Sequence record: OR699282.2
Strand: one strand, 5' to 3'
DNA: 64,000 bases
The translations under genes were made by a program, and so were the position numbers. Shown piece after piece: positions 1 to 64,000 of this stretch. The number at the start of each line of letters is the position of its first letter. Within the stretch, counting starts at the first letter, position 1. Below the pieces are notes generated by a model. It was not told the DNA's origin. It made no database searches and was given only the letters and a program-made list of their open reading frames with translations.

Positions 1-267
1 AGTTTTATTGTAGGTGATATTGATGCATTCAAGTATTTTGACAAAGGTGCAAAACATTTTGAAATTCAATGTCTTAGTACTGCACTATGTGAACTCATTA
101 AAATTTACATAAAAGAGTATTTGGGTATTGACAATGTACGTGTACCAGAGTATACTTTTTCTATTGAATTCGATTGTGAATCAATCAAAGAGTTTGGAAT
201 TCTTTTCAATAAACAAATAGAACTTGCAATTCAAAACGAAATCAAGTACTATACTACTAACATTTAA
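1..267 (+). CDS. hypothetical protein, 5'-truncated by window
   Basis: open frame from base 1 to TAA 265-267. Confidence 0.7.
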   Translation, partial: SFIVGDIDAFKYFDKGAKHFEIQCLSTALCELIKIYIKEYLGIDNVRVPEYTFSIEFDCESIKEFGILFNKQIELAIQNEIKYYTTNI

Positions 268-282
268 TCAGAGGAAATTATC

Positions 283-465
283 ATGCAAATTATCATTCTT
301 ATCGTTGGCATCATGCTGGGTGTTTACGGTCACTCCTGGATGAACGAGAAGTTTCCTAATACGCGTCCTGAGTATTGCAGTACTAATGTATTCCAGAATG
401 GTGAGAAACCAAAGGAAAGCATTGGTAAAAAGCTGGATAAAGTACTTGATGTGATCAATGAATAA
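283..465 (+). CDS. small membrane-anchored protein
   Basis: GAGG RBS; hydrophobic N-terminus MQIIILIVGIMLGVY. Confidence 0.75.
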   Translation: MQIIILIVGIMLGVYGHSWMNEKFPNTRPEYCSTNVFQNGEKPKESIGKKLDKVLDVINE

Positions 466-676
466 GGGCCATAAAATGTTTAAACCGAATTCCAATGTTG
501 GTAAGAAAGTTCAATTACTTGAAGATGTATCCACCATGAGTGGAATTTTCCCAAGAGGTCACATCATGACTATTATTGCCGAAACATCCCGTGGGTGGGA
601 TTTGGAAGATGCTGATGGTAATCGCATCCTTGAGGCTGGATTCTATGGTCATCGTGAATATAAAATCATTGATTAA
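458..676 (+). CDS. hypothetical protein
   Basis: overlaps upstream stop; operon context. Confidence 0.75.
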   Translation: MNKGHKMFKPNSNVGKKVQLLEDVSTMSGIFPRGHIMTIIAETSRGWDLEDADGNRILEAGFYGHREYKIID

Positions 677-772
677 GGATACAACATGACTTTAGAGATT
701 GTCTTTGGTATTGTTAGCTTAGTCGTCTGTGTGGGTTGGTTTGGGTATCTGATGATTTTTGGTGATTAATAC

Positions 773-800
773 TTGACATAAGATATCAGTACTGTATAAT
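773..800 (+). promoter_or_regulatory. sigma70 promoter
   Basis: TTGACA-16-TATAAT, AGTACT in spacer. Confidence 0.85.
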
Positions 801-893
801 GTTTATATCAAAGGGAATGCAGTGAAAGGAAAGACAGCATAATCGTACTCGTCACTGCGTTCCCGCCCTTTTAAATTAAATGAGGAATTAACT

Positions 894-1202
894 ATGTTTC
901 AAACTAACACTCAAGGTTTTGTAATCATCGATTTGAATCAAAACAGCGGTTATTGGATGAAACCTACTGACGCATGTATGCAGTTTGATTTTTTAGGTTA
1001 CAGGATTAGTGTAAGTACTGGTGCTTCTGTACTGCGTGGTGGTTGTATCGTTGAACATCTGGTAACTGATCCAGAAGGTCGTGAGTATGAAATCGCAGGT
1101 TCGGTACAAGATGCCATTATGTTTGTATGTCAGCGTGAAATGAATAGTTCGAATTCAAATGCACTGACTCATGCTCTTTCTCAAGAAGTGGAGGTTCGTT
1201 AA
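894..1202 (+). CDS. hypothetical protein
   Basis: GAGGA RBS; ORF track. Confidence 0.8.
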   Translation: MFQTNTQGFVIIDLNQNSGYWMKPTDACMQFDFLGYRISVSTGASVLRGGCIVEHLVTDPEGREYEIAGSVQDAIMFVCQREMNSSNSNALTHALSQEVEVR

Positions 1203-1453
1203 TGAAATATATCGTAGCAGTACTCGTTGCATTTTTACTCACTGCATGTGACGCTTCAACAAAAGAACGCACAAGTGATTTTATTCTCCCTATTGAATTA
1301 CAAGAAGCAGGATGTAAGATTTATCGTATGCAAAAGGACGGTGCTGGCGTAACCTTGTATACAGTTTATTGCCCTAATGCAAATACCAGTACTGGATACA
1401 GCAGCGGTAAAACACGAATCAATACTTCAGTGATTAATGGAGTACAACAATGA
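1202..1453 (+). CDS. lipoprotein
   Basis: signal peptide with lipobox LTAC. Confidence 0.8.
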   Translation: MKYIVAVLVAFLLTACDASTKERTSDFILPIELQEAGCKIYRMQKDGAGVTLYTVYCPNANTSTGYSSGKTRINTSVINGVQQ

Positions 1454-1818
1454 GCCTTGATACAACCCGTGCAACAGATTTATTAACTCGTATGAATAAT
1501 GAAGAATTTCTTGCTGAAATAAAGTACAAGCTTGAAAAACTGGCACGAAGTGCTGAAGTAATTGAAGTTGAAGGTCACTTACCAATGGACCAATTCAATA
1601 CGTTCAACGAAGATATGGTTTATTATCCAAATGAAATTTGGATTGAGTGGGAGTCATGGACTAACAAAACTCTACGCATTGAAGGTTATTGTGTGAATTA
1701 TGAATCTGAACCTGGTGATGTTACAAAAACTCTCTCCATTTGGTGTACAAAAACACATGAACTCGTTGAGGTGAATTTGAATTATATGAAAGGTTTCCGT
1801 TGGGGTGATGTTCAATGA
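1450..1818 (+). CDS. hypothetical protein
   Basis: ATGA overlap; GGAG RBS. Confidence 0.8.
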   Translation: MSLDTTRATDLLTRMNNEEFLAEIKYKLEKLARSAEVIEVEGHLPMDQFNTFNEDMVYYPNEIWIEWESWTNKTLRIEGYCVNYESEPGDVTKTLSIWCTKTHELVEVNLNYMKGFRWGDVQ

Positions 1819-2090
1819 TTAAAAAACTATTGACAGTTGTCTTTGTATTCTGTACAATGTTTCTTACAGCATGTAATGATGACGGCAGGTTTAGTGCAAA
1901 AGACTTAGTTCGTCAGGATTGTACATTCACAGGTAAGTCTTTTATTAACGAGTATGAGGTATGTACACAATCAGGCCGTATCTGTGGTGGTTGGGAAAAA
2001 CGACAGGAGCGATTGTATGTATATGAATGCCCTGGACATCACAACAAAGTACTAAGCACACACAAACTTGTTTATGATAAGGTTGAATAA
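1815..2090 (+). CDS. lipoprotein, Cys-rich
   Basis: signal peptide with lipobox LTAC; four further Cys in mature part. Confidence 0.8.
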   Translation: MIKKLLTVVFVFCTMFLTACNDDGRFSAKDLVRQDCTFTGKSFINEYEVCTQSGRICGGWEKRQERLYVYECPGHHNKVLSTHKLVYDKVE

Positions 2091-2305
2091 TGACTACCAA
2101 TGAAATGATGCAGGTTATTTGGGATAAAGGTTGTGATATTAAAATCACTAGTACTGATGTTCGTGTATTCAAAACTGAATATATGGAGTACTTGGACCTT
2201 GATACTTATAATAATATTGTATCAATTGAACACAAAGGTGCAGTACTGGAAACCATTGACGTAGTACTCAAGAAAGCTACCGACCTATTAGGAGTGGCAG
2301 TGTGA
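2090..2305 (+). CDS. hypothetical protein
   Basis: coupled start; ORF track. Confidence 0.75.
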   Translation: MTTNEMMQVIWDKGCDIKITSTDVRVFKTEYMEYLDLDTYNNIVSIEHKGAVLETIDVVLKKATDLLGVAV

Positions 2306-62339: not shown

Positions 62340-62429
62340 AAACTATTTGACAGTACTAACCAGTAATGTATAATGTTTTACATAGAGCGGGGGAATAGTT
62401 CTCCCGCCAATAGTTTGGAGTAAAACATT

Positions 62430-62630
62430 ATGTCTATCGCTATCGCCCTGGTTGAAGTACTGAAAGAAGCTAAAGCCAACCAGATCGACGTAAAGATCCA
62501 GGAACTACAAAACGGCGTAATCGGCTGTACTTGTACCGCTGGTGGAGCGGCAGACTATCGAGAACACGAATCACTCGAATCACTGGTTCGGTATCTTACC
62601 ATGATCGTTGATGATTGGAGAATCATCTAA
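62430..62630 (+). CDS. early hypothetical protein
   Basis: GGAG RBS. Confidence 0.75.
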   Translation: MSIAIALVEVLKEAKANQIDVKIQELQNGVIGCTCTAGGAADYREHESLESLVRYLTMIVDDWRII

Positions 62631-62651
62631 CAAAAAAGAATAAAAAAGGGA

Positions 62652-62728
62652 TTGACTCCGGTCAGTCCCTTTGCTATTATATACGCATAGACAAAAACTA
62701 GCCCACAGGGTGCATAGGTGTATCCAAA
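62652..62728 (+). ncRNA. double-hairpin element copy K
   Basis: cassette promoter; GCCCACAGGGUGCA..GUGUAUCC. Confidence 0.55.
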
Positions 62729-62874
62729 ATATATAGTTAATAACGGTGAGTAACTATCTGCTGGTGGAGTGAAAACTATTAATAAAAAAGTATTGACAAA
62801 GTATATCAGTACTGCGATAATGTATCTCGTAGGGCGGCAATGGTGCAACGGCCCACAAAGTTAGGAGATTCAAA

Positions 62875-63207
62875 ATGAGTACTTCAATCGCTATCGTTAA
62901 AGCTTTCATCCGTACCAATGTTTCATCTGTATTCATCGACGGACTGGATCGTGAAGTAGAATACTCAATCATTATCGCACAGACTGCAAACGGTGCTCGG
63001 TATATCCTCAATGATAGTGAAGCAAATCACTACTACTTCACTAAAGCTACTGGCTTTAAACGCATCGATGCCGATGTAGTATACGCTAAGATGAATAAGC
63101 TGGTAGACAAGATTAACGCTAAAGGCACTATTGATTTACAGTACTGGACCGAAACCGATCCAGAATATGGATCTCACCGCTACCTGAATCCAGGTATCAA
63201 AATGTAA
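62875..63207 (+). CDS. early hypothetical protein
   Basis: AGGAG RBS. Confidence 0.8.
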   Translation: MSTSIAIVKAFIRTNVSSVFIDGLDREVEYSIIIAQTANGARYILNDSEANHYYFTKATGFKRIDADVVYAKMNKLVDKINAKGTIDLQYWTETDPEYGSHRYLNPGIKM

Positions 63208-63296
63208 AAAGTACTTGCATAGTACTTAGATTCATGTATAATGTTTTACATAGAGAGGGGGAAATGGTTCTCCCTCCTAAATTAAGGAGTTTTATC

Positions 63297-63698
63297 ATGA
63301 CCTTCTCAATCACTTCCTTCGCTGACGTTTTAGTACTGGCTCGGACTTTTGGTAAAGATGCACTGGAGTACGCTGTAAGTAATGGCACTATCCAACCGGA
63401 ACAGTGCCGCATCATTGGAAACTGCAAACGTTGGGCGGTATCCAATACTATTGCACTGGAAAACTTCCACGATGGCAACAATGAATATTCTGTTGATGTA
63501 GTATTCGAAGCCGTTGATCTCGGCGGTATCTATAATACTAACCTGAATGATGTGCGTATCGTTCGCACTGGGTTCGGTGCTTATGATGTATCTATTCGTG
63601 AAGCTATGAACACCGGATACATTAGCAAGGACTTACTTGCTCACATCATGCAGCTGTGTACGGAACGTAACGAAGCACGCACTATCTTAGGACTGTAA
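63297..63698 (+). CDS. early hypothetical protein
   Basis: AAGGAG RBS. Confidence 0.8.
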   Translation: MTFSITSFADVLVLARTFGKDALEYAVSNGTIQPEQCRIIGNCKRWAVSNTIALENFHDGNNEYSVDVVFEAVDLGGIYNTNLNDVRIVRTGFGAYDVSIREAMNTGYISKDLLAHIMQLCTERNEARTILGL

Positions 63699-63766
63699 GC
63701 GTTACACATCACCAAACATCATAGGCCGCTCTCTAGCGGCCTTAACTATATCAGGAGTACATACAC

Positions 63767-63976
63767 ATGATCTATACAGTATACAGCGTCCTAGGCACTA
63801 TTGCAGGCGTACATGATAACGTCGATAGTGCTATGCGTACAGTACTGCAACAGGTTCCACTAAAGCCTAAGACCATTAAGCAGATGACAGCACGACTAAC
63901 CAGGGCGACCGATGGCGTGGAAGTATGGCAGGACTACGGGGATACACAGATAATCGTTAGCGTAACGAAGGATTAA
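63767..63976 (+). CDS. early hypothetical protein
   Basis: AGGAG RBS. Confidence 0.7.
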   Translation: MIYTVYSVLGTIAGVHDNVDSAMRTVLQQVPLKPKTIKQMTARLTRATDGVEVWQDYGDTQIIVSVTKD

Positions 63977-64000
63977 TGCGTAAAGGGATCTAGTACTGAT

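Follow-up and report, generated by a model that had tools for sequence, protein, structure and literature searches.

The palindrome AGTACT is over-abundant across a clade of enterobacterial jumbo phages and doubles as an early-promoter element

Why should a phage genome that has discarded many of its six-base palindromes be crowded with one of them, AGTACT? The question is raised by a 64,000-nucleotide stretch of DNA (the window), which is identical in its letters to the last 64 kb of the record of Escherichia phage BAU.Micro_ELP-22 (OR699282.2, record positions 309489-373488). ELP-22 is a culturable lytic coliphage of the 121Q/PBECO4 group with a genome size of 352 kb, deposited as a 373-kb Asteriusvirus record. 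The excess of AGTACT is genuine, strongly selected and clade-wide, and the same word serves as an element of early promoters. It is apparently undescribed: no paper in the literature searched ties AGTACT to these phages, and those on CBB, RaK2 and fEgEco12 cover promoters, methyltransferases or termini and not the motif.

The window contains 295 copies of AGTACT, compared with 22.3 +/- 4.6 (maximum 34) in dinucleotide-preserving shuffles. This is 13.6 times the order-0 expectation, and an order-2 Markov model predicts 49. Under the maximal-order model, which conditions on AGTAC, GTACT and GTAC, 240 copies are expected (z=9.2) and the word ranks first of all 4096 hexamers, while the second-ranked palindromic hexamer reaches only 2.7x. 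The initial annotation, made from the letters of the window, had counted 23 copies in bases 1-5000 against 1.7 expected, and both figures are exact; its GC content of about 34% belongs to the whole genome (34.1%) and not to the window (35.9%). Density rises along the window from 3.2/kb in 1-36 kb to 6-7/kb in 36-64 kb, although part of the count at 37-64 kb comes from paralogous promoter cassettes and gene arrays. The whole record was put together from annotated stretches. It holds 923 copies against 119 expected at order 0, with every 10-kb bin enriched and densities running from 1.1-2/kb in the late genes to 6.4/kb in the terminal repeat, 2.6/kb overall.

The selected unit is sharply delimited. 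One-mismatch variants of AGTACT stay at or below 2x, and GTAC itself stands at 2.2x. Around the core, the flanks of all sites show a weak symmetric preference (C on the 5' side and G on the 3' side, then T-rich and A-rich), with G the rarest base directly 5' of the core; [CT]AGTACT[AG] occurs 444 times and [AG]AGTACT[CT] 108 times. Extended forms are strongly over-represented. The 8-bp form CAGTACTG accounts for 66 sites in the window and 199 in the genome (3.4 expected), TCAGTACTGA occurs 47 times genome-wide (0.37 expected) and TTCAGTACTGAA 17 times (0.04 expected), with about one quarter to one third of the copies of the latter two lying within the first 6 kb. Window counts of AGTACTTGCA, AGTACTGTATAAT and TTCAGTACTGAA are 18, 14 and 8, respectively. 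All this occurs in a genome that otherwise avoids palindromes: 23 six-base palindromes with at least four G/C are wholly absent, although 8-32 of each are expected, GCGC is missing (293 expected), and CCGG, CGCG and GGCC stand at about 0.4x. With those 23 purged, AGTACT is a deliberate exception in the ELP-22 genome.

Selection acts on the DNA word and not on any one reading of it. As the initial annotation had stated, AGTACT recurs throughout coding and non-coding DNA: 214 copies in the window are coding (3.8/kb), 76 are non-coding (9.8/kb, in 12% of the window) and 5 span a boundary, so that non-coding density is 2.6x coding density. The coding copies fall in all three frames (87, 47 and 80). 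Shuffling synonymous codons within the window genes leaves 66 +/- 6.6 copies (z=22.6), draws from global codon usage give 46, and permutation of codon order gives 27; both codon choice and amino-acid order are bent toward the word. That annotation had made its claim depend on the enrichment outlasting a correction for GTAC and codon usage, and it persists under both the Markov and the synonymous test. Twenty-six large single-copy structural and replication genes outside the window (57.7 kb) carry 102 copies against 31.5 +/- 5.0 in synonymous shuffles (z=14, 3.2x), so duplicated cassettes do not account for the excess. In these core genes and the window genes together, 156 of the 299 Ser-Thr dipeptides are written AGT-ACT (52%, against 14%, or 42, expected), and Val-Leu is written GTA-CTG 58 times where 7 are expected (8x). 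More than 35-50% of the positions at which the protein sequence permits AGTACT carry it, and about 85% of all sites lie inside genes. Taken over all frames, non-coding DNA and synonymous shuffles, AGTACT is selected at the DNA level.

AGT, ACT and GTA are preferred codons in ELP-22. The phage also encodes tRNAs, including a tRNA-Ser(GCU) that reads AGT/AGC and a tRNA-Thr(UGU), at positions 41087-45408 of stretch L008 of the assembled record and 28303-32119 of stretch L012; both tRNAs are kept in RaK2 and could help to bear the AGT-ACT codon load.

The excess extends well beyond ELP-22. Relatives were compared as stretches of 14-50 kb and Escherichia coli K-12 as one 50-kb sample. AGTACT is enriched in Klebsiella phage RaK2 (7.5x), a second RaK2-like genome (9x), Cronobacter phage GAP32 (7.2x), Yersinia phage fHe-Yen9-04 (5.9x) and the terminal repeat of Klebsiella phage fENko-Kae01 (19x), an excess of 6-19x across five genera. 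The more distant Pseudomonas phage PA5oct (1 of 13 expected, 0.1x) and Agrobacterium phage Atu_ph07 (3 of 14, 0.2x) are depleted, phi92 has none in 29 kb (9.8 expected), and in the rV5-like phage W70 the word is confined to a 1.5-kb early gene/promoter piece common to the window. The E. coli K-12 sample holds 3 copies against 11.6 expected, or 0.06/kb against 2.6/kb in the phage, a gap of about 40-fold. The flank preference depends on the genus (ELP-22 and RaK2 strongly favour CAGTACTG, GAP32 and fHe-Yen9-04 only weakly), which makes the hexamer the unit common to the clade.

Density is conserved more firmly than position. Across genera, where aligned regions share about 69-70% of their nucleotides, 33 of 113 sites persist and other hexamers predict about 17% (p=0.0015); positional conservation between genera reaches only 22-33% of sites, and density is upheld in four genera while most positions turn over. 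In a comparison with phage G17 (94% identity), 76 of the 83 sites are unchanged, with 78% expected from other hexamers (p=0.001), and TATAAT boxes fare alike (17 of 18). From these alignments, the word is under purifying selection with turnover, its sites evolving more slowly than their flanks.

Placement on promoters forms the second line of evidence. A scan for TTGACA-N15-18-TATAAT with at least 10 of 12 matches found AGTACT starting at fixed distances before the first base of the -10 hexamer: 7-8 bases in 22 promoters, 27 in nine, 30-31 in four and 17-18 in four. With TATAAT set at -12 to -7, these sites occupy about -19 to -14, -39 to -34, -42 to -37 and -29 to -24, respectively, so the word flanks or overlaps the -35 hexamer and abuts the -10, where the initial annotation had put it. 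Among the 14 perfect 12/12 promoters in the window, AGTACT lies 7 bases before the -10 in eleven and 17 bases in two. The site pairs reported at 48150/48170, 45487/45508, 56038/56058 and 58665/58689 are all present. Helical phasing held in part: paired sites at promoters are spaced by 20-22 bp, on the same side of the helix, while genome-wide periodicity is clear only at 3 bp (codon), and a 21.5-22 bp period is marginal (its power was reached by 0.002 of position-jitter controls, with 26 periods tested). The terminal repeat of the distant fENko-Kae01 shows the same four placements, even though its -35 is TTGACA and not TTGCAA and the surrounding sequence differs.

These promoters, all on the plus strand, come in several arrangements. 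A two-site form at 48147-48202 has AAAAGTACTTGCAA, in which AGTACT is fused to the -35, followed 20 bp on by AGTACTG-TATAAT; the same design recurs at 48934, 52546 and 56038. Class A (50471-50570) reads AAAAAGTACTTGCA, a 16-nucleotide spacer and TATAAT, with AGTACT 27 before the -10; the 18 window copies of AGTACTTGCA were noted above. Class B (53914-54008) reads TTGACA-N10-AGTACT-G-TATAAT, with the site 7 before the -10. Class C (51028-51118, also 54222 and 62006) places two sites 22 bp apart around the -35, as AGTACT-A-TTGACA-N9-AGTACT-GG-CATAAT. At 55619-55682, and again at 62340 and 20768, the word covers the 3' end of the -35 (TTGAC-AGTACT). By contrast, the terminator-hairpin-embedded promoters within 6508-19996 (+ strand), of the form GGGTTGACTTCGGTCAGCCC-TTTTTGC-TATAAT, carry no AGTACT, nor was it found on putative middle (GAGACAA-N-GnTATAAT) or late TATAAATA promoters. 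Its absence from these three other kinds makes it specific to the immediate-early promoters of the terminal repeat, which are near consensus and should be active on injected DNA that is still naked, needing only host polymerase.

Where do the longest copies lie? The record has a direct terminal repeat of 21,279 bp without a mismatch between its copies, window 42722-64000 (+ strand) being the same as record 1-21279; this right copy holds about 70 small early genes, mostly with their own sigma-70 promoter. In phage fEgEco12 the start of the repeat was defined by PhageTerm and restriction mapping, and window 42722 matches that left terminus letter for letter. The region that the initial annotation called the hub (42635-44397, 19 copies) is thus the physical left genome end with its non-coding leader; the 1.7-kb leader alone has 17. 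There the motif does lengthen, as claimed, to palindromes of 12-14 bp. Over leader and junction combined, (T/A)ATGATTCAGTACTGA occurs eight times and the perfect 14-bp palindrome ATTCAGTACTGAAT twice, at 44251-44264 and 44304-44317, with eight copies of TGATTCAGTACTGA clustered alongside the 14-mers. Extended copies stand on either side of the physical end, at 42643 and 42703 upstream and at 42820-43102 downstream. A second perfect ATTCAGTACTGAAT pair, 121 bp apart, occurs at record 294761-294774 and 294882-294895 (44761 and 44882 of stretch L008) in the tRNA region, in a non-coding stretch among small annotated open reading frames and spacers with a consensus promoter adjacent, and may be another control region.

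Which agent, then, reads the word? We tentatively favour, a little short of even confidence, a protein-binding site: AGTACT would be the core of a recognition site, in full form ATTCAGTACTGAAT, for a candidate and probably dimeric DNA-binding protein that gates the immediate-early promoters and marks phage DNA. We read the combination of a few long symmetric sites in control regions with many short ones as the product of a dimeric sequence-specific DNA-binding protein. Selection at the DNA level, conservation in the clade, the promoter offsets, the symmetric extension and the exemption of the word from palindrome avoidance all speak for this reading. Such a reader would be made or carried by this enterobacterial jumbo-phage clade. 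With one or two dimers on one DNA face, 20-22 bp apart, the -35 region would be covered and RNA polymerase excluded, switching off the strong early promoters as the reader accumulates; alternatively, and less probably, the reader would hold these promoters on. It would also settle along phage DNA, at the roughly 900 weaker sites scattered there, and hardly on host DNA, and the resulting phage-specific coat or identity mark could provide compaction, protection or discrimination from host DNA.

Several observations weigh against a binding site. Pfam or PHROG scans covered about 70 phage proteins, a part of the proteome, and returned no DNA-binding families. The set took in most proteins of at least 75 amino acids from the terminal repeat, the neighbours of the sigma factor, those of the methyltransferases, and 45 proteins from the terminal repeat and post-sigma region. 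The unit common to all sites is the sharply bounded hexamer, and so short a site resembles a restriction/modification target more than a typical operator. The flanks of promoter sites are asymmetric, being set by the -35 and -10 elements, duplicated cassettes supply part of the promoter signal, and genome-wide helical phasing is, as noted, marginal. Two candidates for the reader were set aside. One is the first early gene (44398-44817), whose upstream operator array is the richest; it has homologues in rV5-like and phi92-like phages, and AGTACT is not enriched in the one sampled phage of each. The other, the virion protein ENKO_019 of fENko-Kae01, has no homologue in ELP-22.

A bolder version, possible but doubtful in our estimate, treats AGTACT as a viral code for self DNA, a word written through the genes even at the cost of altered protein sequence, by which a reader distinguishes phage from host DNA. 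That reader would coat or protect the phage DNA from the entry of the terminal repeat onward, and the same word would act as a master switch timing the immediate-early promoters.

Known systems share individual features with AGTACT. Like the cyanobacterial highly iterated palindrome HIP1 (GCGATCGC), it is a short perfect palindrome in many-fold excess, present in coding and non-coding DNA and kept across relatives with site turnover. HIP1 differs in being cellular, 8 bp long and GC-rich, with orphan methyltransferases linked to its inner sites; AGTACT belongs to a lytic phage clade, is 6 bp long and AT-rich, is wired into promoters, and has no evident cognate methyltransferase and no repair-bias signature that we found. 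Operator regulons such as those of IncP KorA/KorB, or of SPO1 TF1 at early promoters, likewise reuse one palindrome at defined positions near the -35 and -10 of many promoters, so that one protein shuts an early set, but they comprise tens of sites in control regions only, against a word lying mostly within genes. Chi and DNA uptake sequences are also far denser in self DNA than elsewhere, with density and not position conserved, and inverted uptake words form terminator stems, as AGTACT does; those words, however, are asymmetric, with RecBCD and ComP as readers. In our case an excess over Markov- and codon-corrected expectation, with abundance conserved while positions turn over, accompanies a palindrome at fixed positions over core promoter elements, kept in fENko-Kae01. 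AGTACT is HIP1-like in its statistics and operator-regulon-like in its placement, and fits the full definition of neither.

The strongest rival, in our view rather unlikely, is that AGTACT is the target of a phage methyltransferase, either protecting the DNA from ScaI/Eco255I-type restriction or acting as an epigenetic switch on early promoters, with injected DNA fully methylated and newly replicated DNA not. AGTACT is identical to the ScaI site, and Eco255I of E. coli is a ScaI isoschizomer. A sharply bounded 6-bp palindrome is what type II enzymes recognise, and 923 copies in a palindrome-purged genome would mean high exposure to an AGTACT cutter unless protected. Two methyltransferases are annotated in the phage, one Dam-like (PF05869) and one of the C5-cytosine family (PF00145), and RaK2 DNA has been reported to resist methylation-sensitive enzymes (PMC3622015). 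Protection alone, however, does not explain enrichment, and phages normally avoid ScaI-type sites, as phi92 and the 23 purged palindromes illustrate. The symmetric 10-14 bp extension also exceeds a 6-bp enzyme site, and fEgEco12 DNA is cut normally by ten enzymes, ScaI not being among them. Within the part of the proteome covered, the annotated methyltransferases and nucleases and the proteins encoded next to them, neither an endonuclease of ScaI type nor an N4-cytosine methyltransferase turned up. Nor can the presence of a methyltransferase serve as a correlate of AGTACT, as both families are too widespread to inform: the Dam-like family occurs, for example, in Stx phages, and phi92 has a C5 methyltransferase of 50% identity, yet lacks the word in the 29 kb examined. 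The initial annotation had proposed the site of a binding, methylating or nicking protein that organises the genome and gates early promoters. Selection in all frames and in non-coding DNA, together with retention across genera, bears out a DNA-level signal; homologues of both annotated methyltransferases occur widely in other phages, and a part in organising the genome is inferred.

A role as a nicking, cleavage or packaging site is very unlikely; in that case a nickase or terminase of the phage would read the word, for instance to start recombination-dependent replication or to pick out phage DNA for packaging. The clustering of extended copies on both sides of the physical genome end would fit, as would the host/phage contrast in density, which suits telling two DNAs apart. 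The termini themselves are not at AGTACT, though: the left one lies 14 nucleotides after a copy in ELP-22 and about 24 after one in fEgEco12, and the right boundary of fEgEco12 falls in motif-free sequence. Such a role also leaves the fixed promoter offsets unexplained. That right boundary maps about 130 bp past the end of the repeat in the ELP-22 record, which indicates that the deposited repeat is probably slightly short. A copy of AGTACT 3 nucleotides from the right end of the record was accordingly rejected as a genome-end motif, since it reflects the truncated repeat.

We see only a slim chance that a host protein common to Enterobacterales reads the word and that the phage exploits it, for instance to block cell division through SlmA. 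All phages seen to have the excess infect Escherichia, Klebsiella, Cronobacter or Yersinia, and those of Pseudomonas or Agrobacterium lack it, a host range that simple phage-clade phylogeny also fits. The SlmA-binding site (SBS) of E. coli nucleoid occlusion, GTGAGTACTCAC, is a palindromic 12-mer with AGTACT at its core (PMC3020112), and its dimeric helix-turn-helix reader binds dispersed DNA-marking sites. SlmA, however, requires G1, T2, A4 and G5 with a purine at position 3, and these flanks are absent from the phage consensus TTCAGTACTGAA. The flanks even oppose it, G being the rarest base before the core, and the phage genome contains no SBS-like site (GT[AG]AG[TC][AG]CT[CT]AC). A SlmA hijack was rejected for these wrong flanks; the likeness suggests a possible way of working, not membership.

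Equally improbable is a neutral drive, in which biased mismatch repair or conversion tied to a methyltransferase would accumulate the word, as proposed for HIP1 (PMC4390886, PMC5861425). The filling of so many permitted positions would be hard to achieve by weak selection at each site, and HIP1 provides the precedent. Such a drive predicts depletion of single-step neighbours, which was not found: the deamination neighbour AGTATT/AATACT stands at 1.08x, no single-step neighbour is depleted, and the one-step synonymous neighbours of Ser-Thr lie at expectation (0.95-1.5x), the depleted TCN-ACN pairs being several steps away from AGT-ACT. It also leaves the fixed promoter offsets and the extended palindromes unexplained.

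That the hexamer is a functionless by-product of codon usage, GTAC richness or duplicated cassettes is scarcely credible: the preferred codons, the 2.2-fold GTAC, the phage tRNA-Ser(GCU) and the paralogy of promoter cassettes and gene arrays all lean that way, but they are contradicted by the synonymous shuffles of window and core genes, the conditioning on both 5-mers, the enrichment of single-copy core genes, the richness of non-coding DNA, and the same density in four genera at about 70% nucleotide identity to ELP-22 in aligned regions.

Over-abundant palindromes of the HIP1 type have resisted explanation for decades, and AGTACT brings the same phenomenon to a culturable lytic coliphage. 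Relatives with and without the motif, together with an early-promoter read-out, make the question experimentally tractable, and the word breaks a palindrome-purging rule that its genome obeys for 23 other hexamers and GCGC. Should there be a reader, jumbo-phage DNA would have a new global regulator or organiser, and the protein could double as a phage-specific DNA tag. If the sites are methylated or nicked, a new modification system would be present in phages under development for therapy against E. coli, Klebsiella and Cronobacter. A self-DNA code, if true, would give phages an equivalent of parS, SBS or uptake-sequence systems and would, for the first time, open a functional way into a HIP-like palindrome. 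The promoter grammar of AGTACT, -35 and -10 also permits annotation of immediate-early promoters across these genomes.

The window falls into four blocks: tightly packed small genes (1-24.3 kb), an RCC1-like paralogue cluster on the minus strand (24.3-37.1 kb), 24 tandem paralogues of about 60 amino acids (37.2-42.4 kb) and, past the leader, the early genes with their promoters (44.4-64 kb). The RCC1-like ("regulator of chromosome condensation") cluster, at 24300-37140, comprises about 12 paralogues, some fragmented, each with a TATAAATA-type late promoter and a GCCAGTAC-N3-GTACTGGC terminator. These hairpins (25498-36027, minus strand; for example 29118-29136, 31140-31160, 32404-32422 and 33614-33632) are the palindrome CCAGTACTGG split by a 3-nucleotide loop, in agreement with the GTAC-containing terminator stems first reported. 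The micro-gene junctions described with them are likewise present in the tandem array (37244-42447, + strand), where AGTACT sits at the conserved C-terminal codons and stop junction (GAA GTA CTT; AAG TAC TAA). The array consists of paralogues of about 60-75 amino acids with the pattern MNxxKEYY...LLIFRY, and one gene of 219 amino acids is inserted at 39277-39936.

Other regulatory features accompany these genes. The terminator-promoters, at 6508, 9750, 9933, 12362, 16936, 18218 and 19939, combine a GGGTTGACTTCGGTCAGCCC stem containing a -35-like TTGACT with TTTTTGC and TATAAT at 18-nucleotide spacing. Putative middle promoters, GAGACAA-N14-15-G(n)TATAAT, occur in stretch L007 (record 200-250 kb), for example before the primase, single-stranded DNA-binding protein and exonuclease genes, and a gene for a phage sigma-70-family factor lies just upstream of the window (record 306913-307878). 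At about 24 early promoters (44394-63290) the 5' leader contains a GC-rich hairpin, AGGGGAGAA-N3-4-TTCTCCCCA, which comes 8-15 nucleotides past the -10 and ahead of the ribosome-binding site. These hairpins (for example 50829-50870, 52344-52385 and 56686-56725) have no T-run and no Rfam match, an Rfam scan of the whole window having returned no family, and they may be mRNA stabilisers or processing sites.

Within the leader at the genome end, 43500-43627 is a non-coding run of degenerate 8-bp tandem units (GGATGGCT, AGACGGCT, AAACGGCT) that may be a packaging or injection signal. Chi (GCTGGTGG) is about 12-fold in excess genome-wide (16 + 12 against 1.1 expected per strand). In the window it lies on the plus strand at 43311, 50415, 54748, 56211, 57479, 59550, 60959, 62538 and 62760 and on the minus strand at 43299 and 50353; the nine co-oriented copies in the terminal repeat, several within terminator stems, may shield the linear ends from RecBCD.

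Early genes, promoters and leader hairpins (window 45213-60884; 10113-11634 of stretch L013) are 86-88% identical in the Vequintavirinae W70 and A73, and homologues of the first early gene occur, besides the rV5-like and phi92-like phages, in records labelled Campylobacter phage; this similarity suggests that unrelated coliphages have exchanged early cassettes. The one public RNA run with raw reads has none on the stretch. In manure and wastewater metagenomes, contigs (window 47000-52999) join differing promoter cassettes while skipping 0.3-4.7 kb, for example from 48177 to 52905, which could represent shuffling of gene cassettes among strains or assembly collapse on repeated promoters. One early product, encoded at 59203-59457, has a ParE-like toxin domain (PF24732, E=6e-11); the gene upstream of it (58746-59141) encodes a 131-amino-acid protein without family matches and has three copies of AGTACT in its promoter region.

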